Below are positions 3,950-62,400 of a DNA stretch of 64,000 nt, piece after piece; position 1 is the stretch's first letter; each line of letters opens with the position of its first letter. The notes beneath the pieces were generated by a model. It did no database searches, was not told where the DNA came from, and was given only the letters and a program-made list of their open reading frames with translations. This DNA comes from Macrostomum lignano. Its lineage: Eukaryota. The DNA lies in contig NIVC01003688.1 of assembly GCA_002269645.1 (NCBI GenBank), forward strand, positions 1-64,000. Reading direction: 5' to 3'. The position numbers and the translations under genes were made by a program.

Positions 3950-6900
3950 TCAGGCATTAATAGGCTGATAAGCGCTGACAGCGCCGTCTGGCGCCGGCTG
4001 TCGGCACCTGCGCACGCACAGATAGATAACGGCGGCCGACATCAAAAGAAACGGCAGACCCAAGCCGCACAGAATGACAATAATTACCAGGGTTGACACA
4101 GCATCGGCTGGCGGCTGGCCGAGGCCAACGGAAACCGTCCTTGGAAAAGTTAAAGAAATTAAAGTTAGGTTTACTAGCGCGTGAAAGCTGTAGCCGAAAT
4201 CAAATTAAAATGGCTGGGATTTTTAGCTCTTTCACTTAGTAAAAAAATTAAAATACTGTTAGAATAGGACGCATATTACAATTGATACCAATCTAGCACT
4301 ACGGTTTTTAATAGCCGGATCTGAATCAATGACAATGGCAATTGAATTTTCGATAATGGCACCTAGATGTTCGATAATGGCACCTAGATCTACTATAATG
4401 GCCCCTAGATTTTCGATAATGGAACTTTGATTTTTAAAATGACACCCAGATTTTCGATAATGGCACCTAGATTTTCGATAATGGCACTGAGTTTTTCAAT
4501 AAAATGGCACCTAATTTTTTGATAATGGCACTCAGATGTTCGATAATAGCACCCAGATTTTAAAAATGGCACCTAGACTTTCAACAATGACACCTAAATA
4601 TATATTTTCGAGATTTCTATTATATAATTAGTACTGTATGTTAGGCAGATGTAAGATTTCTAAATTAACCTAAAAAAGACTTATTAAAAAGTAATAAAAG
4701 CCCGCATAAAATGTAAAGCACTCACCACACAGTATAGTTAGTTGCAGCGTAAAACTTGTCCTTAGGAATGCCAAATGTGACATTAATAGCTCTGGCGCCG
4801 GTTAACTGAAGCAAATCGCCTCCATACAATGGATAGGCAAAGCTATTGTTAAGCGCCTCAGTTAAGCCAGCTGACAACTGAACAAGGTCCGTATGCTTCA
4901 CAACTGTACTGTTACTAATAGTACGCTTCTCGGCTTTATAGCACACCGGTTTCCATTGAGCGTAGCAAGAATCAGGCGAAAGCCAATTAGACATTCGAAA
5001 TACACCGGGCGTGAATTCGTCATCAATATTGGGTACGTATTTAATCTTCTGTTCTCTCTGCTTTCCATCGGCATCTGGTGTGCCGTCTAAGAGAACAGTT
5101 TCAACACCGAATCTGGCATCTGGCACGCTGCTAAACAGATCTTTGAGTTGGAATTCTACTTGAGTATTATTGCTAGTGAATTGCAACTGAGGCAGATCGT
5201 CCGCTCTGCCTACTGTAGGCGACAATTGCACTTTTAATTTCAAACTGCTGCCGTTCTTTTTAAATATTTCAGCTAGATGTTCGTCTCCAGCGTTCTCAAC
5301 TGAGTAAGTGGCCGGGTCAACCTCCGGTGCCATCGTTTCTGGTGCGATTCATAATGGCGATTAGGATGAGATATAGGTGCCCTATAGTAATCAATTATAG
5401 GCTGCTTTTCTAATGGGGTTTAAAGGGAATTCTACAGATTAGAGGAGAATTCTATTAGTGGATTAGAGAAGGTTCTATTATCGGAAGGGAATGATGATCG
5501 GAAGGGAATTCTATTACCGGATCGGAGGGGAATTCTATTATCGGATCAGAGGGGAATTTTATTATTTGTTTAGAGGGGAATTCCATTATCGAACCGGGGG
5601 AATTCTCTTATCGGATCGAAAGGGAATTCTATTTTAGGATCGGAGGGGAATTAATTTATCGGATCGAAGGGGAATTCTATCATCGGATCGGAGGGGAATT
5701 CTAATGTGGAGATTCCTAAACTGTAAGACCCGTAGATACAGGAGACATTTAGTGCAAAGCAGATCTATTAGCACCTTACCCATCATACTATAAGCAGACA
5801 AAACAAACTGAGTCAAGCCGTTGCTCAGAATCTCCGGTGCCTGTTCCAGCCGCCACAGAAAACTACTGAACGGATAGACGTGAGTAGTATTAACAGGATT
5901 TGTTGGAATCTCGACTTTGTCATTCTTGTCGGAGTATTCGATTAGCTAAAATTATATATAAAGGATGCAGTTGAAAATATCATTATCAAATTAGCATTGT
6001 GTCAGAGTACTGGACTTACATTGGTGAAAGCAAAAGTAAACTTCGACATTAATTTAGCTTTCGGATTGCTAAACGACAAAGCATGGCCTTGTCCGTTGAA
6101 TTGGCAGAGAATATATCAGGCCAGGACACGCTGGCTACTTGTTTAGGATCGTCAAATTGAGCATAGGAGATGGCCACATCGCCGAGGCCCTCGCCAACTG
6201 TGACAAATACATGTAGAGAATCTGCGCTGCGTTGCAAGCGACTGTACACAAGCAGGGTGCCGTTGTTGCACAGCGATTGACAGCTTGGATTGACCTCTGT
6301 TACGAACTAGGGTTATATAGGGAAGAAAATGTTTATGTAGTAAAGTAATGGATTTTGCTGATTTGTTTTTCTACACAGTCAAGAGCTAAGGTTTTATATG
6401 CTCAATGATAATAATAATAATTGACTACGCCTGCCCTAATGGCAGATGTGCAACCAACAGCTCAGCCGCAGCCATTGCGCGGCGCATCTGAAGGCTGTTC
6501 AGTCCAAGGATTGGGGGTCGCCACACAGCTTCAATTACCCCAGCTAATGCTGGCACTCATTTTACAGCTGGGTGAACTGAAGCAATACAGAGTGTGTTAA
6601 GTGTCTTGCTGAAGGACACACAAATTGTTCCAAGTGGGATTGGGATCAAATCCTTAGCCTTCTAGTCATGAGTCTGACGCTCTAACCATTAGGCTACAGC
6701 CCCCCTTAGGTTCACAAACATTAAATTGCTTTTTTCATTGAATTACTTAAAAAATCAATTGTTATATAATATGTTTTATAAGTAAGTTTCTATACAAATT
6801 TAAATATATTACTACCTTTGTAGCATAATACTGGGGATCACACAATATCACATTTTCAAGATTTTTAAGACTCAATGCCTATATTTAATTAACTTTAGAA

Positions 6901-22765: not shown

Positions 22766-22798
<33 letters not shown>

Positions 22799-23255
22799 AG
22801 TACGCAGCCCCGCATACAGCGTCACACTTAGAGCAGGGTGCGTCAGAAAGCGCGCCGCAGAGCCTGAAAGCGGACGAAGTCCGCTCCGCTGTTGGCAGTG
22901 TCGGGCGCCCCAGCGTTGCATACATTTTAGGAGGCAGTCCACGTATCGACGGGTTCGGGCCTGACCCCGCCTGAACGGGCCCTGCAAGGTGAGCAGCAGG
23001 ACGTTCTAAACAGGTTGGGGGCAAGAACACGTGGCCCGCCAGTTGAAGTCGCCGCCGGTGCAGGCTGATGGACGGGTGCTGCAGCTTGGCCGATCGTACA
23101 GGGCCTCGGTCCCGACGCTCTCGTCAGCTCGAAAGGCTGCACGGAGCAGCCCTGAGTGTGAGTCGGCCGGCACAGTCAGCACCTTGGTCATCAGCGTGTT
23201 GACAACCAGACCGACGCTCGATGCCACCTCGACCAGCCTGTCGACACATCCCAGA
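22713..23255 (-). mobile_element. 5'-truncated, internally deleted non-LTR retrotransposon 3' end (RTE-like) with (TTG)n tail
   Basis: Broken peptide ASSVGLVVNTLMTKVLTVPAD / SGLLRAAFRADESVGTEALYDR / RRLQLAGHV / LLTLQGPFRRGQARTRRYVDCL resembles the post-RT C-terminus of RTE-type ORF2. The tail is the CAA run at 22730-22798. Confidence 0.7.
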
Positions 23256-23474: not shown

Positions 23475-23590
23475 TTAAAGAGTCGCTTCATCTCCGCTGC
23501 CACCGAGAATGGACACAGTCTCGCTTTGACAAAACTCTTCATTGAATTCGGCGGCTAATGGACTCAGAAATTCTCGTTGTTGTTGCACAG

Positions 23591-23627
<37 letters not shown>

Positions 23628-24772
23628 AAGCAGGCGGCGTTGACGTCTGCGCCTCGGTGAGCTGTTAGCAACCTGAGCAGGCGGCACCCTCGACACCAAC
23701 GGCAAGGTGTTGCCATCCAGGTAGCCAGTGAGGGAGTAACTGCCCGAGTTCTGTTGCCGCTCCGACCGGAGGTAGCCTGCGGCCGAGGCCCCGCCCGTCC
23801 GGATGCCGAGCAGCTGCTGGAACGCGCACCGGAACTCTCTCTGATTGAAGCAGTACAGTATGGGATTCAGGCCAGAGTTTAGGTAGCCAATCCAGGTGAT
23901 CAGGTCACGTGCCAGCTGGCCAGGCCGCTGCACTGGCTAGCCGTGAACGGGCAGGCAACGTACATGACAAAGAAGGGCAACCAGCAGACGTAGAAACAGC
24001 CAAGGATCAGGCCGAGCGTCTTCGTGGCTTTGGTCTCGTGCCGGATCTGCCGGCAGGCCAGGCCGCCCTGCTGCGCCCTGATGAGCTCGCACTGGTCGGT
24101 GGCGATCCGGTGCACCCTGGCGTAGGCCAGCGTCATCACCAGCAGCGGCAGGAAGAAAGACGTGCTTGCTGACACCACGGCGTAGGAGCGGTTCACCTCC
24201 ATGCGGCACTGCGGCACCCCGGTGTCTGACGGTTCGGCCGACGCAGCTTCAACTGGTCGCACCAGGCCGGAGAACACCGGGCCGAAGCTCAGACCGATGC
24301 TGACCGTCCAGACCACGCCGACCGAAGCGACAATTCGTCTGGGCTGTACAATCTGGCGATAGCGCAGCGGCTTGTTGACTGCGATGTACCTGTCGAGACT
24401 GATGAGGCACAGGTGCAGGATGCTGGCCGTGCAGCACATGATGTCGCAGGATTGAAAGAATTTGCAGAATAGGTCGCCAAACGGCCAGCACTTCAGGAAC
24501 ACGTAGGCTGTAGACGAGGTCATCACGGTCAGAGCGATAGCAATATCCGCAGTTGCTAAGGACGCCAAGAGATGGAAGCATTTCTGCGAACGCAATCGAC
24601 GAAATATGGCCACGGAGCAGATGACCAGCGAGTTGCCAACCAGGGTCTCAACAATGAGCAGCGTCATGAGCAGCAGGGTCAGCAAGCGAAGCGGCAAGTC
24701 CTGGGAAGTCCATAGGAAAGAGAGGGCGGACTCGGTTGAGGACCCGTTTGAGCAGATCGATAGCGGCGGCAT
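23475..24772 (-). CDS. Intronless class A aminergic GPCR (octopamine/dopamine/adrenergic-like), one frameshift near 23925
   Basis: GN in TM1, LATAD in TM2, CDIMCCTAS (Asp3.32) and DRY in TM3, Ser-rich TM5 (VSASTSFFLP), CWLPFF in TM6. WIGYLNSGLNPILY (TM7) lies in a second frame. The C-tail has a polyQ tract. Confidence 0.92.
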
Positions 24773-25639
24773 CGGCTGTAGCAATTGCTGTGTTGCAGGC
24801 TCGATTTGCAGTCAATCGAAAGCAGAAACCAGCCAGGAGAGAGGATTATTTTCCAGTCTCTCGGATAGGGGATTTGGGAAGCGGACCTCAGTGTCGCTAA
24901 GCTGCGAGCCAAGAAATAGCCGCGGGGGGTTCAATGCTTTCTCTCTGTCCCACTAAACACGAGGGACGGCGACTCAAAAAGGCTTGCCTAGAGGTTCCTC
25001 GCCTCACTGCACTGATCGCACTGTGCTTTAGGGATCTTCTTAGGCGATTTCCCATTGGTTTGTACGGAGAGCTGTTCAAATAGCCGCAGCCAATGATGCT
25101 GGTCAAGCTTCATCGCGCTTGCACAGTTGCTAAGCTCAAATACTCAACTCCGGCCTTCTATACATACAGTGTACGATATTCTGTGGAATGCAACTGATAT
25201 TTCTCTGTCGTTAACAATTTTCATCTAGTTTAAAAAAAATCGAACCACAAGTAATTAATCCATAGACTTTGGCGAAAATACTGGTATACGAGTATACTCG
25301 TATTATCTCATAATCAAGCTGATCCAACAACATACATTTGTTAATGTCAGACAGTCTACCCGAATTGTCAGACAAACTACAGAATTTAAAAACAGTTTTA
25401 CGGAATTCTCAGACTACAAATAATTTTAAAAAATGCCAGGTGTAATTTATCGCGCACGAGCTGTCATTACTTATAAAGATCTGAAGTACCACTGAAGAAA
25501 ATTGCGCTTAGACAAAAATGTAGGAATGACAAGATAGGTCAGAAAAGGAGCCACTTCAGAATTAGACTGTCACCTGATTCAAAAACCTGTAGGACCTGGA
25601 GCTAGTTCATAAGAGTGCATCTGCTCAGTTGCACTGTAT

Positions 25640-28240: not shown

Positions 28241-28314
28241 TAGTATGCATCTGAGTTGAATACTATACAAGTGCATTGCTATGCACTTTTGCTGACATTA
28301 ACACGCGCGTGGGA

Positions 28315-28875
28315 TGCGAAGGCAACTTTCACTGAGATTAACTGTGTAGCATTCGAGTCCCCTAAGCTAGACCCTCAGCGCATTGCATTCGAGCTAGCTG
28401 CTGACTCTCTGGCCCAGCGGATACTCAGGCGGGTCCGGTCAGGCAACTGGAAAAACTGCTCAGAAGCCGAGCTGCCTTTCAAAAAGGTCTCCGAGTGCCT
28501 GACAATCGAGGATGGTATGTTGCATATGAAGAGGCGTGTCTTCATCCCGCCCCGTTTGCGGTTAAAGGCATTCAATTCGGTCCACGATACTCACTCAGGG
28601 GTTTGTACACCAATGTTCAGCTTGCGCAAAACTAAGACCGCGTCTAATGAAATCACGCGACACCTGGCCCCAAGCCTCGGGCCCGTTCCAAAGGATTCAC
28701 ATCGACTGGGCCTTTGTGCCTGAAGCAGGAAACGTCCTAATAGTTGTGGATGCTTTCTCCGGATGGATCGAGGCATTCCCTACCAAGGACAGGTCTGCGA
28801 ACAGTGTCGTGAAGTGCCTCCGAACCGTTTTTTGCCGATTTGGTGTTCCAGAGGTAGTTGTATCCGACAACGCGT
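28315..28875 (+). mobile_element. Ty3/Gypsy integrase fragment (zinc-binding start plus rve core), broken
   Basis: LTIEDGMLHMKRRVFIPPRLR...HDTHSGV and WPQASGPFQRIHIDWAF...LIVVDAFSGWIEA...LRTVFCRFGVPEVVVSDNA. Confidence 0.92.
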
Positions 28876-29230
28876 CTTGCGTCTTGCGTCTTACAAGAAA
28901 TCAGGAAAGCGAGTAGAGCGAGAAAAAGCTATTTGTCTTGTCAAACAACTATGGCTATAGTGCATCTCGTCAAACAGCCGCGCTTATTAATTGGAAAAAT
29001 CTTCCTGTCGACGACTGAACGAACCGTGCGGCGTACCTAGGAAGAAAACGCGACCATGCAGTCTTCAACGCCTCGACGGCTATAAGCGATGCCTCAAAGC
29101 GGACAATCGATTCAGTCGAGCAGCCGACAGTCCCAAAGAATCCCAACTTGGATACTGCGGTACCAAAGAAGCTCATCAGACGAAGCTCATCAGTCGCAAG
29201 CCAAGACGTGCATCTTTCAAATGGTAAGTT
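28873..29230 (+). mobile_element. Second copy of the 27590-27830 segment, fused to the integrase fragment
   Basis: Shared CAAGAAATCAGGAAAGCG...GTGCATCTCGTCAAACA...TTATTAATTGGAAAAA...GTCGACGACTGAACGAACCGTGCG; ends at donor AATG|GTAAGT. Confidence 0.6.
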
Positions 29231-31270: not shown

Positions 31271-32609
31271 CAGGGAAGCCTCTATGGTCGCTGCGCTCCC
31301 CAGGAAGGGTCACTCACCCGCCCCACCCCACTCCGCTATACGAGTTTAGGGGCATGGCATAGAATGAAATGATGATGCTGCTTATCGATTTCTCGATAAG
31401 TATTTACCTTTCGTATTTAAGTATCACCTTTCGTATTTCACAGCTTGCTATCTAACTGGAAAAAGAATATTGACAGCAATACTGGATATTTGCAGCAAAC
31501 TGCTTTTAAACTTTGCTAAAATAAATCATGGTATTTAATTTCTGTGCTTCACTCTGTCACCAATCTGCCTCGATATGAGAAGAATCCGGCAGTCTCCATG
31601 CACAAATTTCCTTTATCTGCACAGCCAGAGCTTCTGAAAAATGGATCTGTGGAATTCCCCGAAAGTGGACAGCGGCAGAGTTGGAGAAGTTGCGCAGCGA
31701 TCCAAAGCACAACTACCGGATCTGCTGGCTGCTTTTTTCGGAAAGGTTTTTTGTAACCAACTCTCAGGACTCCAAATCCAGCCGTAAACGCTCCGCATTT
31801 GCAAATGCAGATGGACAAGCAAAGTAGCTGAAAAATCGACGGTTGACTTCTGATGCCGTACCCAGCATCTTTTCAAACGCGCCATCCTGCTTGAGTAAAA
31901 CTGTTCCTGAGGAGCGATCTACCACAATGAAATCTGCTCAGACTCGGCGAGAGAGTGCCATGCGTCGCTGCGAGGATGAGGCAGAAACATTCCTCGAAAG
32001 CGATGTCATTACGGACTTCCCTGATCTACTTGCGTTCGAGCTGCCCGATCATTTGCGCTGTTTTTTAAGCACGCATCCGAGTCTCAGGTAAACATTCTCA
32101 ACTGCCCGTGTGCCCTCTGCTGATAGGATAGAGATCGCAACATCAGTGACAGTAGATGTAACTTTTGGCTTTGAGGTCAGTATTGATGGATCGATGCGGA
32201 TTGGCTTTGGCCATGATCTGTATCACCTAAGGGTTTTCTCGCCATGATAAAATATTTCAATTAACTGTCTCTCTCTCCCAAATTCTTCGACAAATCTTTC
32301 CGTGGGTAATCATTCATCTTTTGTTTCATTGTGTTTGGATGGCCTGAAGGGTTGTAAAGTATCTTTCTCGCACTAACAAAGCGGAAGTTTTTTTGAATAA
32401 TACAACTTAAGGTTGCAGACCTAAAGTTCTGAATGTTTTGCGTTGACTAGTGCAAACCGCATCTTTCTATGACTTTTAGTCAAAAAGTTATCAGTCAAAA
32501 AATGAAAAAAACGTTGCATTTCCTATTCATTCACTGCTTTCCAATTGAGCTTTTACCCCTAAACTAGTGTCCCTTCCTGGGGAGCGCAGCGACCATAGAG
32601 GCTTCCCTG
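31271..32609 (+). mobile_element. Non-autonomous P-element-like DNA transposon carrying a decayed THAP domain
   Basis: 39-bp perfect TIR CAGGGAAGCCTCTATGGTCGCTGCGCTCCCCAGGAAGGG; 7-bp TSD CTAAAGG at 31264-31270 and 32610-32616. Frameshifted THAP from 31528: CASLC...SMHKFP...KKWICGIPR...RIC...RLTSDAVPSIF. Confidence 0.87.
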
Positions 32610-35329: not shown

Positions 35330-38300
35330 TCAGTTAATCTTAGCTAGCACAGCGGCCCTATCGTCAGTATTAGTAAACAGAGCTTTCACAATGCCCCTAA
35401 CCTCAGCGTCGCTAAACGCATCGGCTAGCGGACTTTTACCGTCGCACCACAGGTCGGGAAAAGCGGCTAGCGGAGCAGACAGCATCCGGCCCAGTAGGCA
35501 GAACCTCGGCCAGCCGGGAGCGCAGCGCTCTAACGAAGCCGAACCGTTAGCGGCATCGTTGAACACCTTCGCTAGACGCTCCTGAACCCACTGAAAGATT
35601 CTAGCTAGATCATCGGCATCGCGACAATCGAAATCTTCTTGAGCAAGGGTGAACGATGTCAGCTGAGCAAGCAGGCAATGGGCCAGTGCGCCTAAAGCTT
35701 TGCAGCAAATTTTAGTAGGCAGAACAGACCAGACTCTGGCCAGGCATTCCAACTGGTACAGCGACTGGCGGCACAGTCGATTGTTGGCTTCATAGCTGCC
35801 GCCAGATGATTGCTGACCGACTGTCAGTTGACTGGCCGGCTCCAGGATGAGATCGCGCTGCCGGGCCAGCTGGGCCAGGAAAATTCTGGCGCCGTCTGCG
35901 CGCAGAGCGGCTGCCGCGTCTACCAAACATTTTGGCGGCGGATTCGAACCTCGGCCTGATACTAGCGGGCCGACAAATCTGAGGGCAAAGCGATTTTGGG
36001 GCTGTTTTCTGTAACTGGTTCTTTAGGATTCTTTCAAGGGATTATGAGCGATTTTTTAGGAGATTATGAGTGATTCTTTTAAGGGATAATGAGCGCATCT
36101 TTCAGGGGATTATAAGCAATTCTTGTAGAGGATTATGAGCGATTTTTTTAGGGATTATGAGCGACTCTTTCAGGGGATTATGAGTGATTCTTTCAAGGGA
36201 TTATGAGCGACTCTTTCAGGGGATTATGAGTGATTCTTTCAAGGGATTACGAGCGATTCTTTTAGGGGATTATAAGCAATTCTCGCAGTGGATTATGAGC
36301 GAGCCTTTTAGAGGATTATGAGCGATTCTCTAAGAGGATTTTAAGCAATTCTTGTGGGGGATTATGAGCGATTCTTTCGGAGGATTATGACCGTTTCTTT
36401 CAGGGGATAATGAGCGATTACTTCAGAGGATTATGAGCAGATTTTTTAGAGGATTATGAGCAATTATCTATAGAAGATTCCTGTTAAAGACGTGAAGCTA
36501 ATATAAGACAAGCAACTAACCTATGCTCAATATCCACAGCGCAGTGAGCCAAATAGTGACAATTATTATAATACAGAGCGGCCAGTTGCGGCACAGACGC
36601 CAGCTGCTCGGCGTGAATCAGGCTGGCCGTGTCCCGATAGAGCAGCAGAAGTTTCCGGCAGCACTGGCCAATGCGACAGCGAAGCTCGGCGCTGAACTTG
36701 CCGTCAACTGCGCCTTCTCCTCTTGCTGCTCCGTCGCTCGAGTCGCCGACTCCGTCTCCAGCGGTTGCCGATGCTTCCCGGCAAATCTGGCCAATATATT
36801 CCACTAAGTCAATGGCCGACTGGCTGACCCGACAGGTTGGGAAAGCAAATGTGCGCCTGCGTTTGTTTTGAATCAGTGGAGAGATTATTAAATTTTCTAT
36901 TTACAATAATAATTACACAGTTTACATTTGCTACTGATTTAGTAGTGCAAATAGTGTCGATTTGATATGTTAACTGGAGCGCTTGATGTTTCTTTTATTA
37001 AATAATAATTCATTTAACACACTCATGAACTAATCAGAAAATCGATGACTCACTCAGCACACTCGATGACCAATCAGAAAATCGATGACTCACTCAGCAC
37101 ACTCGATGACCAATCAGAAAATCGATGACTCACTCAGCACACTCGATGACCAATCAGAAAATCGATGACTCACTCAGCACACTCGCTGACCAATCAGAAA
37201 ATATATGACTCACTCAGCACACTCGCTGACCAATCAGAGCATCGATGAGACAATCAGCACACTCGCTGACCAATCAGAGAATCGATGACTCACACAGCAC
37301 ACTCGCTGACAAATCAGAGAATCTATGACTCACTCAGGACACTCGCTGACCAATCAGAGAATCGCTGACTCACTCAACACACTCGCTGACGAATCAGAGA
37401 ATCGATGACTCACTCAACACACTCGCTGACCAATCACAGAATTAATGACTAAATCAGCGCACTCGCTGACCTACCAGAGAATCCCTGACTTACTCAGGAC
37501 ACTCGCTGACTAATCAGGGAATCGATTCAGCACACTCGCTGACCAATCAGAGAATTGTTGACTCAATCAGCACACTCTCTGACTAATCAGGGAATCGCTT
37601 CAGCACACTCGCTGACCAATCAGAGAATTGATGACTCACACAGCACACTCGCTGACCAATCAGAGAATTAATGACTCAATCAGCACACTCGCTGACCAAT
37701 CAGAGAATACTGTACCCCTTCAAACAACCAGAACAAACCATAGCTAGTCTTACCTATCAATGTACTTTTCAATCAATTCAACCGCCTCTTTCCCACCACC
37801 GATGCAGTCGCCAAAATCGATGGCATCCATTCCAGTCTCCGACTGGGCGGCAGCCTCATCAACTAGAGCGCTGTCGGCTAGAGAGCGAGCGGCAATTTCG
37901 CGTCCAGCTTCCAAAATAGCGGCAATGCGTTTCTCGGCGAATACGACGCCAATTTCGCGAACGAATTCGCCTAAACGACTGACGTTGGGCGACACTAAGC
38001 GGCATTCGACAACAAGCTGGTGCTCGAGGCGCTCCACTGCCGCGGCCGTTTCTCCGTAGGCCTTGGGAGATTTGAGCAGGAGAATAACTAAATATCGGTT
38101 TTATGGCATCAATTAAGTGGGAATGAAGTTGGGATGGGATCAGTGAAGTTGGATGGGGATCACTGAAGGTGGGATGGGGATCCCTGAATGTGGGGGGATA
38201 CCCGAATGTGGGATGGGGATCCTTGGTGGGATGGGGATCCCTGAAGGTGGGGGATCCCCGAATGTGGGATGGGATCATGGAATTTGAGATGGGGGATCCC

Positions 38301-39930
38301 TGAAGGTGGGGGATCCCCGAATGTGGGATGGGATCATGGAATTTGAGATGGGGGATCCCTGAAGGTGGGATGGGATCATGGATTGACATGGAATTTGAGA
38401 TGGGGATCCCTGAAGGTGCGATGGGATCATGGAATTTGAGATGGGGATCCCTGAAGGTGGGATGGGATCATGGAATTTGAGATGGGGGATCCCTGAAGGT
38501 GGGATGGGATCATGGAATTTGAGATAGGGATCCCTGAAGGTGGGATGGTATCATTGAATTTGAGATGAGGATCCCTGAAGGTGGGATGGGATCATGGAAT
38601 TTGAGATGGGGGATCCCTGAAGGTGGGATGGGATCATGGAATTTGAGATAGGGATCCCTGAAGGTGGGATGGGATCATGGAGTTTGAGATGGGGATCTCT
38701 GAAGGTGGGATGGGATCATGGAATTTGAGATTGGGGATCCCTGAAGGTGGGATGGGATCATGGAATTTGAGATAGGGATCCCTGAAGGTGGGATGGGATC
38801 ATTGAATTTGAGATGGGGATCCCTGAAGGTGGGATGGGATCATGGAATTTGAGATAGGGATCCCTGAAGGTGGGATGGGATCATGGAGTTTGAGATGGGG
38901 ATCTCTGAAGGTGGGATGGGATCATGGAATTTGAGATTGGGGATCCCTGAAGGTGGGATGGGATCATGGAATTTGAGATAGGGATCCCTGAAGGTGGGAT
39001 GGGATCATTGAATTTGAGATGGGGATCCCTGAAGGTGGGATGGGATCCTTGAATTTGAGATGGGGATCCCTGAAGGTGGGATGGGATCATGGAATTTGAG
39101 ATGGGGATCCCTGAAGGTGGGATGGGATCATGGAATTTGAGATGGGGATCCCTGAAGGTGGGATGGGATCATTGAATTTGAGATGGGGATCCCTGAAGGT
39201 GGGATGGGGATCACTGAAGTTGGGATGGGGAGTGGGGAGATCGATTTACAATATAAAGTGAAGTTTATAGTCCAGAGTACAAATAATTTCGAAAGTAATA
39301 TTTCATGTTATAAAAGAGATTTACCTGCAGTCCAGCCCAGTCCGTAGGCACAGTCTTAGCTAAACAATCTGTAATCAGACGCTCAGCCAGTTGGTTCTCC
39401 ATCAAAGGTCGCAATCGATCAGCCAATGTAGTCATTGCTGCTGGCTGTTGGTCAGACTGGCTCTGCTGCTGCTGCTCTTCAGAAGTGTCGGACAGCGGCA
39501 GGCTCAGCAGGAACTCGCGCAGCGTGTCCAGAGTTGGCGACAGACAGGCGCACAGAGCCAATGGTAGCGGCGGCCTACGAGAGCACCGACGCTGACTGTC
39601 GCTATCATCGACATCGTTTTTGACGTCAGCCTCGCCGTCGGCGGCCTGCTGCTCTTGGCCAGCATCCAGCAGCACCAATTCTAATTGATTTTCAACTGCA
39701 TTGCATTCCAATACGAGAGATCCGTCAGATATTACTGGCAGTAGGAAGCGGGACAGCAGGGTGTCGGCTAATTGGGCGTCCACTTTGGAGTGGAACAGCT
39801 TGAGAGCCTGAAAAGTGAGGCAAAGTTTAATCATGATAATGAGATACTCAATACTAAGATTAATGGAAACATTTCAAATAAAACAGGCAGGCAGACAGAC
39901 AGGAAGGCAGACAGACAAATAGACAGATAC

Positions 39931-42961: not shown

Positions 42962-43026
42962 GTGCAGAAGTTCAAAATCAAAAATAAAAAATCAAAATCT
43001 CTACCTAGAATGACATTGGTTATAAT

Positions 43027-43298
43027 CATACATGCGCAACCTCCAAAATTCGGTCGGCCATGCGACTTAGTTTTAACAAAAATGCGACGTAGTTTTTGGC
43101 CAAAAATGCAAAATTAACGCAACTGTGGGAAAAAGGGAAGGAGTAACTATGACTGTCTTATTAAGTCAAAATGCCTCGTCAGCTACATAGTACTACTACT
43201 TTGGTATTTTTTCGGGTGGGCATTTTTGCGACTTCCTTGGTTGGCCGCCAAATCGGTCGGCCGGATCGGCCGACTTGGCCGACTGTTGCGCATGTATG
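43027..43298 (+). mobile_element. MITE copy 1 carrying a 28S rRNA fragment (43128-43191)
   Basis: 14-bp perfect TIR CATACATGCGCAAC; 8-bp TSD GTTATAAT at 43019-43026 and 43299-43306; internal GGAGTAACTATGACT...AAATGCCTCGTCA. Confidence 0.92.
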
Positions 43299-44573
43299 GT
43301 TATAATGAATAATGATGATAATAATTCTTCTAAGGTTCCTTTGTAAGGCCAACATTTTAGGCCTAGACTGATTTTTTCAAATAATAATAAAAGTTTGGCT
43401 ATTTTAGTTTTATTAGGTCTATCATTAGATCTATTTTTTAAATACAAGTATATTAGGTTGAGCCACAAGTTTATAGAATTTGAACAATTGGAAACTATAA
43501 CAAATAGTCTCAAGAACAAACAGTTTATAGCAATATTATATAGTTACCATTTAAGGCCTTGACCCTCTCCTAACTTGCTTGCAATGCCTTGATACCCTCT
43601 TTCCAGAAGCTTGCAAGCCTTGAATCTATCTATTTCTACATTGCCTGTTCTAAATGTTGCTTGTTGGCAAATTGCTATCTATTGCAAAAGCTCTAAAAGG
43701 ACCTAAACGCATGGCAAGAGGTCTGATAAGCATGGTAGGTGGGGCAAAACATTGAAGCTTAGACTTGTGAGCTTGGCCTAGGTAAGTATTCTTTGTGAAG
43801 CTACACATTGTCAAAAAGGAGCTCCTTGTCATGGTACCCTAGGTAGAGTCTGACCAAGATAAAATTTTTGTTTTCAAGTGAGATTAAGCAAGAATTAAAA
43901 AAATTGAGATTGAGAATAAGTTGATTGAGAATTGGAGATCTGGCTACAATTGTGAATTTGTATAGGAAGAATAGGCCTAGTACTTATGATAAGATATATA
44001 AAACTTAGCCTATATTATAAATAAGTAGATAATAATAATACAAAAGAAGACTCAAATGTGCCATCATAATAAAATATATGTAGCAATATGCAAAAGTAAG
44101 CCATTAACTCTGCCTGTGCCACTGTATGCCATTGCAAGATAAGATATATAAATAGGTTGAAGGTTGGTAATGGCCTACCAGGTGAGCCATAGGATCATGA
44201 TTCATGGTATACCTATGCCAAAACAAATCCTAGGCCTATCAAAATAGTAATTGTTACGCCATGTGCTGGAATTTTTTTTGCAAAAAGAAAAATTATTGAG
44301 ATTATGTATTAAGATTAAGATTGTTTAATTTAAGATTTCTTATGTAATATTAATATATAGCAAATATATAGGCCTAGGCCTAAAAATGTAAGGCCTAAAG
44401 TTAAAAGAATTTATTATTAGTTAAATCATTTTAATTCTTGTACTGCTACTGCTAGCCACTAGGGCGTAGTAATAATAAATACTAAATAGACATATGGACT
44501 AGGCCTATAGCCTGCCTATCTATACAGGCCCAGGAGGCAGGAGCTACTGATTCAATTGTCATAAGGCGTATAC

Positions 44574-44857
44574 CATACATGCGCAACCCCCCTGATTTAC
44601 ACTGGCCATGCGACTTACTTTTTGACAAAAAATGCGACTTAGGCCTACCTATGAAAGAAACTCTAAGAGCAGCATTAACGCAATTTTGGGTAAACGGCAG
44701 GAGTAACTATGACTGTCTTATAAGGGCTAAATGCCTCGTCATCTAATTAGTACTACGTCTGTATTCTTTGGGGTGGGCATTTTTGCGACTTACCCCTGGT
44801 CCACCACAATTTACGGTGGCCAGATCGGCCAGGTCGGCCAGCAGTTGCGCATGTATG
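44574..44857 (+). mobile_element. MITE copy 2 carrying a 28S rRNA fragment (44688-44751)
   Basis: Same 14-bp TIR; 8-bp TSD GCGTATAC at 44566-44573 and 44858-44865. The 64-nt segment is 56/64 identical (ungapped) to the recalled conserved eukaryotic 28S helix 69-71 sequence. Confidence 0.93.
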
Positions 44858-45583
44858 GCGTATACTATAGGGCCTAGTCTTACAAAACGAGTAGGCCTAG
44901 ATCAAAAAATTCCAAAAATGCGTGTAGGGGCGAAAATCAAGCTTAGTGGCGCAAAAAATGCGTATAGGCGTATAGCGGCGAAAAATCAAGCTTAGGCCTT
45001 AGGAACTTAGGGCCATTATGGGCGCAAAAAAGTGTTTGGGGCGAAAAATCAAGTTTAGGGGCGCAAACTTTAGGTTTTTGGAGGCGCAATATGTTCTGTC
45101 AGGCTATTTTGTAGAGGGGGGGGCGAACCTGCGTATCCGCCCCTGCGTATGTAGGGCCTAGGTTAGGCTTACTTAAAAACCTGAAACCTTAAAAAACGTG
45201 AGTGATAAATTATTGAATGAAACAGGTGTGGTGAAGCAAACACGCAAACTTTTGCATTCAAATTTTTTTAGAATCTTCACAGATAATAACAGCTTCTAAA
45301 GAAGCTCAGTTGTATGCGCACAGTAATTAAAGTTTGTCACATGCTTATTCTTTCTATTTTGCTTTAATGTTGTTTTGTTTTATTAGCCCTGTGTTTAATT
45401 ATTTTCAAAAAAACATTTTCATACGGTCGCATTATTTACTACTACTACTGCAATTGGCAAGTACTGCGATATTTTGTGCCGAAGTTGTAACCAAATACAT
45501 TTCCTATTTAATAGTGAGATAGGCCTTAATTTAAGCCTATTCTTGTAAACAAAAAGTCAAGTTTTACTGGGAGTGGCAGAACG

Positions 45584-48500
45584 ATGTCATATGCAAAGGG
45601 TCGCGTTTTGCACATCAGGAATTTGTCCAATCGAGCTGTGTAAGTTTTTGTCATGTCATTAAATTAATTGTTGTGCTATGGTAGCCCCTATGGGTTATTA
45701 TTTAGTTAGGCCTATAATAAACCTATAAGTAAGACATTCATTCTCTCTTATGTTGCTTTTTGCAGTGGCAATTGGGCCATTGGCATAAAAAGTCTTTTCA
45801 CCTAGTTGGATAGGCCTACCAGTCATTTTGGTGACAAGTCATTTTGGTGACAGACAATTCGGTGACAAATAGTCATTTTGGTGACAAAGAGTGGTCGTTT
45901 CAGTGACAAAGAGTAGACGTTTCAGTGACAAATAAAGTTTGTTTCATAATATTAGTTTGTAGTTATTTTGTATATCTATAATATACATATACTATATGTA
46001 TAATTTATAATCTTTGTTAATATCCATGTATAAGTGTCTAGCTTTTATACAGACCCTTAAAGAGTGGATGTTTCAATGACAAATGAAAGACTTGGTAAGA
46101 GATCTTTTTATCAAGTTAGTTTTTAGCTTGTACAAGCTAGTTTTCAATTATTTTGTGTTTATTTAACAAAGCCCAAAAGGAGCAGATAAGTGGTACATAT
46201 ACATAAAGCACTTGCGATGAAATTATAAATACTATAAAGGCTCAAAAGCTCAAAAGGAATGGTATAATGATGGATCCAAATATTCAGATTCGGATTCCGA
46301 ATCCAAAGAAAAGTCTCACTTTTTTAGAAATCCGAATGTTTCAGATTTGGAAATTTTATTTTCCGAATTTCCTAATGTGCTTCCAAATATGAAAAAAAAA
46401 TTCAAAACAAAATTATGCTAATGTAAAAGAAATACAACTTTTTGAAAAGAAAGTCCATTAAAAAATAGGAATGCAAAAATTAGTATAATATCTTTCATTT
46501 TTACAATTGTCTGTTTTTGCAGTAACATATATTATAAAAAAGTGTTATTAAGTAAAGTTAATTAACTTCGTAACCTTTGAGGCATTCAACCTAAAGTTGC
46601 AGAAACATTTAATCGCAGTAATCATTGTTTAAGTGTAATCATTACATTTTTCAAAATGCAAATGCAATGGACTTTATGTGCACTAAATTATACACAGTAA
46701 CTTAGTTATCATATTAAATTGCACAAATATAGCAAGAACGGAGGCAGGACACTAAATTTGACTTTGAGCCTTTACTGGCCAATCGCGCGCTTGCATAGCT
46801 CACCGCTTACAAGGCACACTCTAAAGCATAGCCAGTAACAGTTCAAGCCATGATTCAGCATTTATTGGACTCACCATCAAGCTAAGGCAATGAAATTTAA
46901 CTGATATAAAGTTACGAATATAAAGTATTAAGCAAAACAAAAATATACGAGTATTAATACATTGCAATGCAATTACTTTGCTTTACTTAACACCCGCCTC
47001 AAGTTGGCACCAATTTAAATTACAAAATTAAGGTGTACTACACAAACGTAATATCAGTTAGTATTAGTAATTGGAATTAGTTAGATTAGATATATAAGTT
47101 TTGAGTTTAAGTCTAGTTTAATTCAATTCAGATACTAGATAGATATAGTATAAGCCTGAGATTAGATTGAATCTTATCAGTAAATTAATGTATAGCGCTA
47201 ATACGATTACTAATTAGATGACAAGGCATTTTTGTCACTAAAAGGTGTCATATTTACTCTCGCTGTGTACCTTTTACTTTTGTCTACATTCAAAAACACA
47301 TTCAGATATTTGGATTCGGATTCAGAATTTGTTTGTACATTCGGATTTGGTTTTGGCAACTCTCAAAAATCTACATTTGGTCCATCAATAGAATGTTATA
47401 TGTACACCACACTCAGAAAGGTGTACATTATAGTGGAAAATTCTGGCACATATAAAAAAAATGTGCACAAAGCAGCGTATACAGTGTACAACAAAGGCTT
47501 AGCAGAAGTTTTTAGTGCACAGTGGCATATAGCAAAACCTGATCAGAAAAATTTAGCTTACAATGAATCACTTAAATGTATAATCTGCATATGCAGTGCA
47601 TAAAATATGCTTTAAGATCAAAGCATATTCTGCTTAAAGGAGCAGGATATGAACATAAAGCACTTGCATTGAACTTATATTGTAAAGAAACAAAGCTCAA
47701 AAAGAGCAGTACATATACATAAACTGATAAAGCACTTGCATTGAAATTATAAATACTATAAAGGCACATAGCTCAAAAGGAGCGGTATATGTACATAAAG
47801 TGCTTGCATTGAAATTATAAAGTTCAGAAGTTTAGAAAGCACTTAGTTAGCTAGATTGTCTATTATCCACTGGCACCTGAAACAGCAGCAGGGGCACGCA
47901 CAGTCTGCCGCAAGCCCACAGCAAATGCATGGCAGTCATATTGCTGTCCTGATACTTGCCCTAGAGCTCAAATATTTGGCCTTGCATGTCTCTGTATTGA
48001 CGCCTCTGGATGCATTTTAGTGCCCTCTGTGAGAGCATTTGTGCCTGCAAAGGTGCAGCACTTGAATGAGCAGGTAAAATTGGATATTGCTGCATTGAGC
48101 TCAGTGTTGAAGGTGACAGCTTAGCCAATTCCCATATAATCCTTGACATCTCAATGAATCCCCATGATGTCAAAATGTCCTAATGTTATAGAATCTACTA
48201 ATATAGAACATTCTTAAAGTTGATAAATGCATTATGATAGCTTTTCTCTCATTAGTAATTTTAGTCATAATTTAATTCAACATTTATAATAACTTGTTTT
48301 AATGAAGATAAGACTATACATAATTTGTGCTAATTAAAAAATAGTTTAACTAAATAAATTTATTTTATAACCTTATTGCTTTCAAATATCAAATTACAGT
48401 TTCCAAAAAATTTCCCCTTAATTTTTGGATTTTGTCATATTTATATTATATATATTGCTACATTTCATACATAATATGAGCCATAAGCCCACAATCCCTA

Positions 48501-59400: not shown

Positions 59401-62400
59401 ACAGGGAATCACCAGTTAGACAGGGAATCACCGATTAGACAAGGAATCACCGGTTTCAAACATGGAATCACCGGTTAGACAGGGAATTATCGGTTAGACA
59501 GGGAATCACCGGTTTCAAACATGGAATCCTCGATTAGACAGGGAATCACCGGTTTCAAACATGGAATCACCGGTTAGACAGGGAATTATCGGTTAGACAG
59601 GGAATCACCGGTTTCAAACATGGAATCCTCGATTAGACAGGGAATCACCGGTTAGACAGGGAATCACCGGTTAGACAGGGAATCACCGGTTAGACAGGGA
59701 ATCACCGGTTAGACAGGGAATCACCGGTTAGACAGGGAATCACCGGTTAGACAGGGAATCACCGGTTAGACACGGGAATCTCCGATTAGACAAGGAATCA
59801 CCGGTTTCAAACATGGAATCACCGGTTAGACAGGGAATTATTGGTTAGACAGGGAATCACCGGTTTCAAACATGGAATCCTCGATTAGACAGGGAATCAC
59901 CGGTTTCAAACATGGAATCACTGGTTAGACAGGGAATTATCGGTTAGACAGGGAATCACCGGTTTCAAACATGGAATCCTCGATTAGACAGGGAATCACC
60001 GGTTAGACAGGGAATCACCGGTTAGACAGGGAATCACCGGTTAGACAGAGAATCACCGGTTAGACAGGGAATCACCGGTCAGACACGGGAATCTCCGATT
60101 AGACATGGGAATCACCGGTCAGACACAGGTCCAACCACAGTTTCCCACCTCACGGAAGCCAGGTCCTGCATAGACATGCCCATCTGCTGGTTGCAGGAGA
60201 GGTCCAAGAAGCTGAGCCTGGATTCCATCAGATTGCGCACAGATCCGCTCAGTGTTGAATTGCAGCCAACGTCAAGAGTTCGCAGTCTGGGCGAGTCGCT
60301 GAGGTCCGGCAGTCGCTGCAGGCAGTTGGAGTGAGCCCTGATCGTAACCAGGCGTTCGAGACGAGACAAAGTCGATGGCAGCGTCTTCAGCTGGTTGCCG
60401 GATATGTTCAATTCGCGAAGCTCGCAAAACTGAAGCATTGTTCTTTGATGATGGGGTACGTTTGAATGCTTTTATTTCGTGGCAAGTACATGCACTGTGA
60501 GCGAAGTTAATAAAAAATTCTGACAAGAACAAGAACAGAACTTGCTTTGGGTGCTTCTTTTTATGAGACATTACGCGCTCAAAGTTCATCGGGGCAATTC
60601 TTTTTAACACCCTTCTAATTCCCATCAAGTAAAATTAAAATTTTCTCTCAAACATCAGTCTTATTCCCCTCAAATACTATTTTAATTCGCCTCAAACTCT
60701 ATTCTAATTCCTCTCCAACACCATTCTAATTCCTCTCAAACACCAATTTTAATTCACCTCACATACAATTCTTATTCTCCTCAAGTACCAGTTTAATTCC
60801 CTTCAAATACCATTCCAATTGCCTTCATATACCATTCTAATTCCCCTCAAACAACATTCTAATTCCCTTCAAATACCATTCTAATTCCCCTCAAACAACA
60901 TTCTAATTCCCTTCAAATACCATTCTAATTCCCCTCAAACAACATTCTAATTCCCTTCAAATACCATTCTAATTCCCCTCAAAAAACATTCTAATTCCCT
61001 TCAAATACCATTCTAATTCCCCTCAAAAACATTCTAATTCCCCTCAAATGAGACCATTATAATTCTCCTCAAACACCATTCTAATTCCCCTCAAACAGCG
61101 TTCTAATTCCCCTTAAATACCATTATAATTCTCCTCAAACAGCATTCTAATTCCCCTCAAACAACATTCTAATTCCCCTCAAATCATTATAATTCTCCTC
61201 AAACAGCATTCTAATTCCCCTCAACTTACCATTCTAATTGCCCTCAAACACGATTCTCATTCTCCCTCAAACAGCAATATAATCCCCCTCAAACACCATT
61301 CTAATTCCCCTCAAACACCCTTCTAATTCCCCTCAAATACCATTCTAATTCCCCTCAAACACAATTCGAATCCCGCGGCACACAATGTACTCAAAAGAAG
61401 CCCAGACTCACTCGTCGTTAATCTCCGTGAGCCGGTTAAACGCTAGCAGCAGAGTCCGCAGGCTGCTCCCAAAGTTCTCCGCAAGGAAGCTGACATCTGC
61501 ATCGCTGAATTGGTTGAACGAAGCCGTCAGGACTTGAAGTCGATTGCCGGAATTCCTAAGCGGCAGTTTTGGCAACTCAACGAGCTGATTGTTGGCTAAA
61601 TTCAACTCAACTAGAGCTGGCGTCAGGTGGAACAGAGCCGCTGGTAGCCTAGTTAACTGGTTGCTATGGAGACAGAGCTCTAGCAGCTCAGTCAGACCGT
61701 TGGCAGCCTCGGCTGGCGCAGCTGGCAGCTCGGCTATTCGGTTTCGCTCCAGACGGAGGCTCTGCAACTTGACGCAGCGCCAGATGTCGGCTGGCAGTCG
61801 GCGAATTTCATTGCCGCCGGCGTGCAGTCGGAGGAGGCTGGCTCGGCCAGACGGCCACAAACAGTCGGGCAGGCTGTCAAGGCGGTTGTCACTGACGTCG
61901 AGGCATTCGAGACGCTTCGGTGGCGGCGATATTTTTAGGCTTTGCAGCTCTGCGTTGGCGGGGATCGAGACATTGGCTTGGGGAGGTTCTTTGGAAATTG
62001 TCGATCAGCTTTGGGGAAATCCAGTTTCTCTCTAGTAACCTTGAGGAAAGGCAGTCTCTGTTTAGTGACCTTGAGGTAAGCGAATTCCTTTCCAGTGACC
62101 TTAAGGAAGGCAGTATCTCTTTAGTGACTTTGATATGAATAAAAGCCTATTTTTGTCCAGTGACCTTGAGAAAAGCAAGTTTCTCTTCAGTAACCTTGCG
62201 GAAAGCGAGTCTCTCTCCAGTGACCTTAAGGAAAGACAGTCTCTCTTTAGTGACCTTGAGGAAAGCGAGTCTCTCGAGTAATCTTGCGGAAAGCGAGTCT
62301 CTCGATCCAGTGACATTGAAGAGAGCCAGTTTCTCTCCAGTGACCTTGAGGAAAGCCAGTTTCTCTCCAGTGACCTTGAGGAAAGCCAGTTTCTCTCCAG

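Follow-up and report, generated by a model that had tools for sequence, protein, structure and literature searches.

A miniature inverted-repeat transposable element family of Macrostomum lignano with an internal 28S rRNA gene fragment, probably carried as a passenger

The first 64,000 nucleotides of Macrostomum lignano contig NIVC01003688.1 (positions 1-64,000, hereafter the window) contain two copies of a MITE (a miniature transposable element with inverted repeats) with an internal fragment of the 28S rRNA gene. Copy 1 (c1, 272 bp, subfamily 1) occupies positions 43027-43298 and copy 2 (c2, 284 bp, subfamily 2) positions 44574-44857, both on the forward strand. Each is bounded by perfect 14-bp terminal inverted repeats (TIRs). 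The repeat CATACATGCGCAAC has four exact occurrences in the window, at 43027-40(+), 43285-98(-), 44574-87(+), and 44844-57(-). A search allowing up to two mismatches, for which 0.33 chance matches were expected, added a single near-match, with two mismatches, at 54760-73. Perfect 8-bp target-site duplications (TSDs) lie directly outside the TIRs: GTTATAAT at 43019-43026 and 43299-43306 for c1, and GCGTATAC at 44566-44573 and 44858-44865 for c2. These are the two elements, with different TSDs, that a first-pass annotation of this DNA had reported. The copies are colinear over their full length, with an identity of 74% in BLAST and of 78.5% in the ungapped columns of a MAFFT alignment.

Six-frame translations of both copies were compared with a library of 5.8 billion proteins and gave a single match, the M. 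lignano protein BOX15_Mlig018981g1. The locus of its gene, 27.8 kb of M. lignano contig NIVC01003072.1 (L001), holds three more members of the family. Member m1 (L001 17707-18004, reverse strand, 298 bp) is c1-like and has the TSD AATCTGTG; m2 (L001 20567-20834, reverse strand, 268 bp) is c2-like and has the TSD GCCTAGAT. The third, m3 (L001 12418-12594, forward strand, 177 bp), is 5'-truncated, has no TSD, and is left unassigned between the subfamilies. The 3' TIR of all three is intact or carries one mismatch, and the 5' TIR is preserved at 13/14 positions in m1 and 12/14 in m2. In ungapped columns, c1 and m1 are 92.6% identical and c2 and m2 95.9% (90.5% counting gaps), while the identity between the subfamilies is ~78%. 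The window and L001, which represent two contigs and 91.8 kb together, thus contain five family members and one orphan block, described below. Extrapolation from these five members suggests a high copy number. Scans of metagenome_contigs, genome_contigs, and viral_contigs for the TIR pair and for the MITE-specific variant of the block returned 0 matches. The open reading frame (ORF) of c1 was also used as a probe for more copies in protein libraries; its sole match was a spurious trefoil-repeat protein, and this approach was abandoned.

The four intact copies (c1, c2, m1, and m2) carry four different perfect 8-mers as TSDs, which are constant in length and specific to each site. The reconstructed empty sites are ordinary AT-rich DNA, unrelated to one another and unlike 28S. 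The family therefore moved by a cut-and-paste mechanism with an 8-bp stagger. The view that the two window copies were independent insertions of such a family gained support from the two additional TSDs of m1 and m2. The accompanying proposal, that an element had captured its own target site, is not supported by the empty sites, none of which is 28S-like. With lengths of 268-298 bp and stops in all six frames, the elements have no coding capacity. They combine defining features of MITEs: TIRs, TSDs of constant length and variable sequence, a small non-coding body, and dispersed copies.

The arms on both sides of the internal block are rich in subterminal repeats. The 5' arm of the family contains two to three tandem units of the form ATGCGAC(T/G)TA(G/C)TTTT..AAAA. 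In c1, the tandem repeats ATGCGAC(T/G)TAGTTTT span 43060-43096(+), with direct repeats at 43060-74 and 43082-96, and one more TGCGAC is found in the 3' arm at 43227-32. In c2, two ATGCGACTTA repeats span 44608-44641(+), at 44608-17 and 44632-41, and a third lies in the 3' arm at 44783-92. The family's 3' arm contains a single extra TGCGACTT, preceded by GCATTTTTG, which is the inverse of CAAAAATGC in the 5' arm. The motifs adjoining the TIRs are TCGGCC (5' arm) and GGCCGA (3' arm) in subfamily 1, and CTGGCC (5' arm) and three GGCCAG (3' arm) in subfamily 2. AAATGC occurs two to three times per copy, once within the 28S block. The inverted subterminal motifs change in a coordinated manner between the subfamilies, which points to the arms as the functional, co-evolving part of the element.

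Two superfamilies were compared with the family. hAT elements have 8-bp TSDs, TIRs beginning with YARNG, and the target consensus nTnnnnAn; P elements have TSDs of 7-8 bp, TIRs beginning with CAT, and subterminal repeats, which are typical of both superfamilies. The 8-bp TSD fits hAT, whereas the TIR start, CATAC, does not fit YARNG. The hAT target consensus is not matched either, with T at TSD position 2 in one of the four sites and A at position 7 in three. An 8-bp TSD, a CAT start, and subterminal repeats are all present, although none of them is exclusive to P elements. The transposase may be hAT- or P-like, and the TIR start looks more P-like. Two short ORFs with THAP-like motifs (..HKFP.., AVPSIF) were noticed at 31544-32091(+) of the window; as a THAP or P-transposase remnant they were rejected, with no Pfam match at E ≤ 0.01. 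An rRNA-derived short interspersed nuclear element (SINE), such as SINE28 or the 5S SINEs, was ruled out by the TIRs, the fixed 8-bp TSDs, and the lack of an A-rich or LINE-like tail. R2 and its internally deleted derivatives (SIDEs), which reside in 28S at AAGG|TAGCC and have an HDV-like ribozyme at the 5' end and an R2 3' untranslated region, were rejected on the grounds that the flanks are not ribosomal DNA (rDNA), no Rfam family matches, and nothing lies between the 28S halves. The 8-bp TSDs, which are not TTAA, exclude Pokey and other piggyBac elements.

The internal block lies at 43127-43191(+) in c1 and at 44688-44751(+) in c2. For the comparison with 28S we used the 84-nt R2 target duplex (bioRxiv 10.1101/2024.11.11.623112), which contains verbatim the 28S sequence that the first-pass annotation had given. 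The block of c2 aligned to this reference with 89% identity over 66 columns (BLAST E 1.5e-18), and positions 43132-43191 of c1 aligned with 79%. Without gaps, the c2 block is identical at 56/64 positions, as had been proposed, the differences being at positions 12, 28, 34-38, and 41. The block extends from 36 nt upstream to 28 nt downstream (-36 to +28) of the R2 insertion point between AAGG and TAGCC. Identity to 28S amounts to 49/50 in the flanks and 7/14 in the centre of c2. The corresponding values for c1 are 42/50 and 6/14, in agreement with the earlier observation that this copy keeps both flanking parts with an altered centre. Judged by these alignments, the internal block is derived from 28S (helices 69-71). 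Its short length is the only point in favour of a chance resemblance or an assembly artefact. The E value, the recurrence of the same block in five copies on two independent contigs, and the exact TIRs and TSDs speak against such an origin, to which we attach practically no credence.

Rfam returned no match for the blocks, either at the gathering cut-off or at E ≤ 10; it cannot be expected to pick up 64 nt out of a 3.4-kb model. The arms were compared with ~430 nt of 28S, of which the central 84 nt are confirmed by the published duplex, and showed similarity beyond the block no better than that of shuffled arms. The rDNA-derived part is therefore only ~64 bp long. A wider 28S origin of the element had been considered on account of the TIR, where GTTGCGCATGTATG matches GACGCGCATGAATG of 28S at 11/14 positions, and of the match between ATTAACGCAA and ATTAACGAGA. 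Both resemblances were discounted, since the arms score like shuffled sequence.

All five MITE copies have three changes relative to 28S in common. GGCGGGAG is replaced by GGCAGGAG (G-to-A), the TA after AAGG is lost, and the TTAA run contains two to three extra bases. Together with the identical block ends, these changes indicate that the block was acquired once, before the subfamilies split. Directly after the block, m3 keeps the 28S-like G (TAGTG), and the other four copies have A. The centre differs among the copies (CTTATAAGGGCT, CTTTTAAGGGCT, ATTTTTAAGGCT, CTTATTAAGTCA, and TTTATTAAGCTA), and the R2 / I-PpoI core CTCTTAAGGTAGC is absent from every one of them. In the ungapped count for c2, six of the eight differences fall within an 8-nt span (p 4e-4), and an excess of change at the hotspot had been claimed. 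In the alignment, most of these clustered differences form a single stretch out of register, enclosed by a +2 and a -2 indel. When events are counted, five changes separate c2 from 28S, three of them central, and the clustering is not significant (p ~0.35); the claimed excess was not borne out. The changing centre fits slippage in an A/T-rich run.

An orphan 28S-like block (b3) was found at 47209-47271 on the reverse strand of the window. It has 78% ungapped identity to 28S (flanks 43/50, altered centre 6/14) and neither TIRs nor arms. Its ends coincide with those of the MITE block within 1 nt. The G-to-A change of the family is missing from b3, and no flank substitution is common to b3 and the MITE block. 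A profile of the MITE matched b3 at profile positions 129-194 only, that is, over the block. No TIR or TSD was detected in its surroundings, and its flanking sequences are unique within the window and L001. We rejected the idea that b3 is a decayed copy of the MITE family, as its block flanks are only ~14% diverged from 28S, yet no arm is detectable. It could be part of a related family with the same core, or a discrete 28S-derived unit that inserted more than once. Tandem repeats of ~70 nt (AAAGGAGC..ATAAAGCACTTGCATTGAA) occur ~400 bp from b3, at 47636-47830, with a related copy ~1.4 kb off at 46165-46266. A 19-nt imperfect inverted match (46961-79 / 47729-47) spans b3.

The shared ends and altered centres of b3 and the MITE block, with no flank substitution in common, raise the question of a source that was already damaged. 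An R2-site product of ~64 nt would then have entered the MITE ancestor once and the b3 locus once, an origin compatible with a passenger. Such a product might have come from an rDNA unit misrepaired after endonuclease cleavage or loss of an insertion. Another candidate is the cDNA of a 28S/R2 co-transcript, its 5' end set by the R2 ribozyme. Cleavage of this co-transcript by R2 ribozymes takes place between 9 and 36 nt upstream of the insertion (PMC3774820), and the block begins on its left exactly at -36 relative to the R2 site. Furthermore, the two bases TA that every MITE copy has lost immediately follow the R2 insertion point on its 3' side. The agreement of one end with one of several cleavage positions is nevertheless weak evidence, and no R2 sequence, ribozyme, or 3' untranslated region lies between the block halves. 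Moreover, it is the TTAA run that holds the extra bases, not the R2 junction; the centre is still changing among the MITE copies, which points to ordinary hypermutability; and b3 may be what is left of a related family. We consider a damaged source improbable.

Comparison of the block with the arms gave different results within and between the subfamilies. Within them, block identity was 88% against 97% in the arms for c1-m1, and 95% against 95-99% for c2-m2. The block thus decays at least as fast as the arms, and there is no copy-level constraint on it. This is part of the behaviour that the first-pass annotation had associated with a merely neutral capture.

We conclude that the 28S fragment is probably a passenger of this MITE family, which is abundant in Macrostomum. 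Several observations weigh against this conclusion. In the MAFFT alignment, both block flanks are among the eight best-conserved islands between the subfamilies. For m1 and c2, the flanks agree at 48/50 positions and the arms at 130/182 (p 1e-4); for pairs including c1, the contrast has p values of 0.02-0.08. The flanks also remain 84-98% identical to 28S, with 88-98% in four of the five copies. Such conservation is not obviously expected of a freely drifting passenger. In addition, the 28S reference is not M. lignano's own, neither the window nor L001 contains an autonomous partner with the same TIRs, and b3 is left unexplained by one capture into the MITE. The flank-arm contrast is based on two copies per subfamily and becomes smaller under gap-permissive pairwise alignment (block 83-95%, arms 77-88%). 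The rate heterogeneity between flanks and arms is real but weak, and accelerated, coordinated change of the arms can explain part of their excess divergence.

The conserved flanks could also be explained if the block, or its flanks, had been co-opted as a cis-acting part of the transposon, putatively an extra site for the transposase or a host factor. Source elements keeping the block would transpose better, and inserted copies would decay freely, so the normal decay seen at the level of copies is the pattern expected if only source elements need the block. The flanks are between-subfamily islands like the TIRs and the islands bearing TGCGAC, and one of the two to three AAATGC motifs of each copy is inside the block. 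The sequence of the right flank, (C)TAAA(A)TGCCTCGT, is similar to the subterminal motif CAAAAATGCGAC(G/T)T and makes up an inverted repeat together with the GGCATTTTTGC of the 3' arm. In c1, AAAATGCGACGT and AAAATGCCTCGT agree at 10/12 positions, and in m1 two similarities link the block to arm motifs, one a match of 19 nt (74%) and the other an inverted repeat of 11 nt (91%). Short matches of such size in two copies are often due to chance, however, and nothing in the arms corresponds to the left flank, the longest of the islands (31 columns). The contrast in conservation on which the argument depends varies with the alignment and comes from two copies per subfamily. On balance we find co-option unlikely.

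A further reading combines the flanks with b3. A hotspot unit of ~64 nt (-36 to +28), its cleavage core already destroyed, would have entered the genome more than once, in the MITE ancestor and at b3, and its flanks would have been kept in the source lineages by a bound protein. The binder could be the transposase itself or a protein specific for the rDNA site. We hold this combined reading to be quite improbable. If it were true, the family would represent a genome-wide spread of uncleavable rDNA-hotspot half-sites, linked to R2 processing by the left end of the block, which coincides with the most upstream R2 ribozyme cleavage position known.

The dispersed hotspot copies might also, as the first-pass annotation suggested, be functional in themselves, to the advantage of the host or the element, as a decoy for endonucleases (R2, I-PpoI-like, or Pokey-like), as a template for small RNAs matching rDNA or R2 junctions, or as an RNA resembling helix 69 (H69), with the centre mutated to escape cleavage. 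The 28S identity of the flanks given above, combined with the destruction of the cleavage core in every copy and in b3, would suit such a role. So would a number of copies that, by rough extrapolation from five in 92 kb, reaches thousands, and the presence of R2 in Platyhelminthes (PMC5035012). The evidence from the copies themselves points the other way. Their decay at or above the rate of the arms argues against host-level selection on them, the window and L001 contain neither R2 nor rDNA, and there are no Rfam matches. The H69-mimic RNA put forward by the first-pass annotation was not supported either. The H69 stem is broken in every copy, and only 71% of cells pair, which does not exceed the pairing in shuffled or slid controls. 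The shared G>A and the C>G (c1, c2, and m1) fall in this stem and are not compensatory. A compensatory shifted stem (GGCAG/CUGUC), predicted in c2, was dismissed, as it is not kept in c1, m2, or m3 and shows no covariation. Decoys of ~25-nt half-sites are not known for R2, I-PpoI-like, or Pokey-like enzymes. A function of the dispersed copies is very unlikely.

The passenger interpretation suggests the following course of events. The copies would be moved by the transposase of another, autonomous element, which makes 8-bp staggered cuts (hAT- or P-like). This enzyme presumably recognises the 14-bp TIR CATACATGCGCAAC and the subterminal motifs TGCGAC, AAATGC/GCATTT, and TCGGCC or CTGGCC. An ancestral element gained ~64 bp of 28S rDNA (helices 69-71, -36 to +28 of the R2 site) on one occasion. 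We infer that the likeliest route was filler DNA, copied by template switching while an excision gap or an internal deletion was being repaired. Every descendant has since carried the block, apparently as a passenger without function, and individual copies lose it at a rate that is neutral or higher. The altered centre is explained by a small number of ordinary mutations, for the most part short indels, in the A/T-rich TTAAGGTAGCCAAA, which is prone to slippage.

Captured host sequence is known from non-autonomous DNA transposons, as illustrated by the filler DNA of hAT and P deletion derivatives and by Pack-MULE transduplication. The present family resembles other MITEs with captured host DNA in its short TIRs, fixed TSD length, lack of an ORF, subterminal repeats, and amplified foreign segment. 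It differs from them in that the captured piece is the universally conserved 28S core at the R2 / I-PpoI / Pokey site, and in that this piece is common to all known members of two diverged subfamilies. Dada elements, whose specific targets are small-RNA genes and whose TSDs measure 6-7 bp, are likewise DNA transposons tied to multicopy RNA genes, whereas the MITE copies reside in ordinary intergenic or intronic DNA. In some site-specific retrotransposons, a copy of 28S adjoins the element's own target, and this part has been proposed to pair with the target; the MITE, in contrast, has no R2 sequence and no rDNA targeting.

Transposable elements with pieces of rRNA genes are known, namely the 5S SINEs, Cassandra terminal-repeat retrotransposons in miniature, mammalian SINE28, and Pokey with its intergenic spacer (IGS) repeats (PMC10946416). 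SINE28, the 5S SINEs, and Cassandra are likewise mobile, and their body includes an rRNA-gene fragment; they are, however, retroelements without TIRs and with variable TSDs. The 5S part serves as an RNA polymerase III promoter, and no such role is evident for the 28S block of the MITE. Pokey of Daphnia and its derivative mPok (piggyBac) form a DNA transposon family with MITE derivatives, tied to the same 28S hotspot and containing rDNA-derived IGS repeats (PMC10946416). Pokey inserts at the TTAA of 28S with TTAA duplications, whereas the present MITE carries the site and inserts elsewhere. R2 in Platyhelminthes includes families that no longer have site specificity (PMC5035012). Neither the 2024 catalogue of transposable elements derived from rDNA (PMC10946416) nor the literature searched describes a TIR element with the 28S helix 69-71 / R2-site core, in line with the first-pass annotation, which knew of none.

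Two of the L001 members are connected with the BOX15_Mlig018981g1 gene model, which encodes a protein of 1063 aa with CARD and Roc/Ras domains. Its final 30 codons and the stop are taken from the reverse strand of m1 (L001 17708-17800), and this coding stretch begins one base inside the m1 end. The MITE-encoded terminus is either an exonisation of the MITE or an annotation artefact. m3 is located inside the span of the same gene (L001 10001-17800) and is presumably intronic.

The host genes of the window include an NCU-G1-like exon at 4722-5333(-) and a leucine-rich repeat protein at 61408-61860(-). An aminergic-type G protein-coupled receptor (GPCR) at 23475-24784(-) is split into two overlapping ORFs; the one at 23900-24784(-) has its best matches in M. 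lignano, probably to a paralogue. ZW10, found at 35330-39834(-), shows its C-terminal domain and matches the middle domain weakly; it has both MITE copies upstream. The C-terminal ORF (35330-35926(-), Pfam ZW10_C2) is nominally 46% identical to M. lignano A0A1I8F9B3. The in-frame stretches are identical at 15/15, 15/15, and 17/19 positions and are separated by frameshifted sequence, and another frame of the window reproduces part of A0A1I8F9B3 (RSAI.WRQ). The low identity is explained by the deposited gene model, which is probably frameshifted. Horizontal transfer between distant species, considered because the ZW10 and GPCR ORFs are 46-65% identical to M. lignano proteins, was rejected, given that the ZW10 alignment is perfect in frame.

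Other repeats are also present in the window. One at 22779-23244, directly downstream of the GPCR ORF, recurs at L001 3083-3365 with 83-92% identity and is probably a second interspersed family. A degenerate, frameshifted integrase remnant of a long terminal repeat retrotransposon lies at 28647-28916(+), with 28256-28723 (Pfam rve, E 8.6e-12). Long minisatellite arrays occupy 15.7-16.2, 17.2-20.7, 22.3-23.0, 33.0-34.2, 41.1-42.1, 56.0-56.7, 62.1-62.7, and 63.3-63.8 kb and give rise, on either strand, to spurious ORFs for repeat peptides. One array, at 17.3-18.5 kb, has a counterpart at L001 22068-22702 with ~75% similarity.

These results describe a well-defined and probably high-copy MITE family of a model flatworm, and a clean case of a DNA transposon with a piece from the best-conserved region of 28S rRNA. 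Copies of the family will draw reads and probes that match rRNA, and may be taken for fragments of rDNA. In one annotated M. lignano gene model, the final 30 codons come from a copy of the family. If protein binding or an R2-linked origin lay behind the conserved flanks and b3, the family would join rDNA-specific elements to ordinary DNA transposons.

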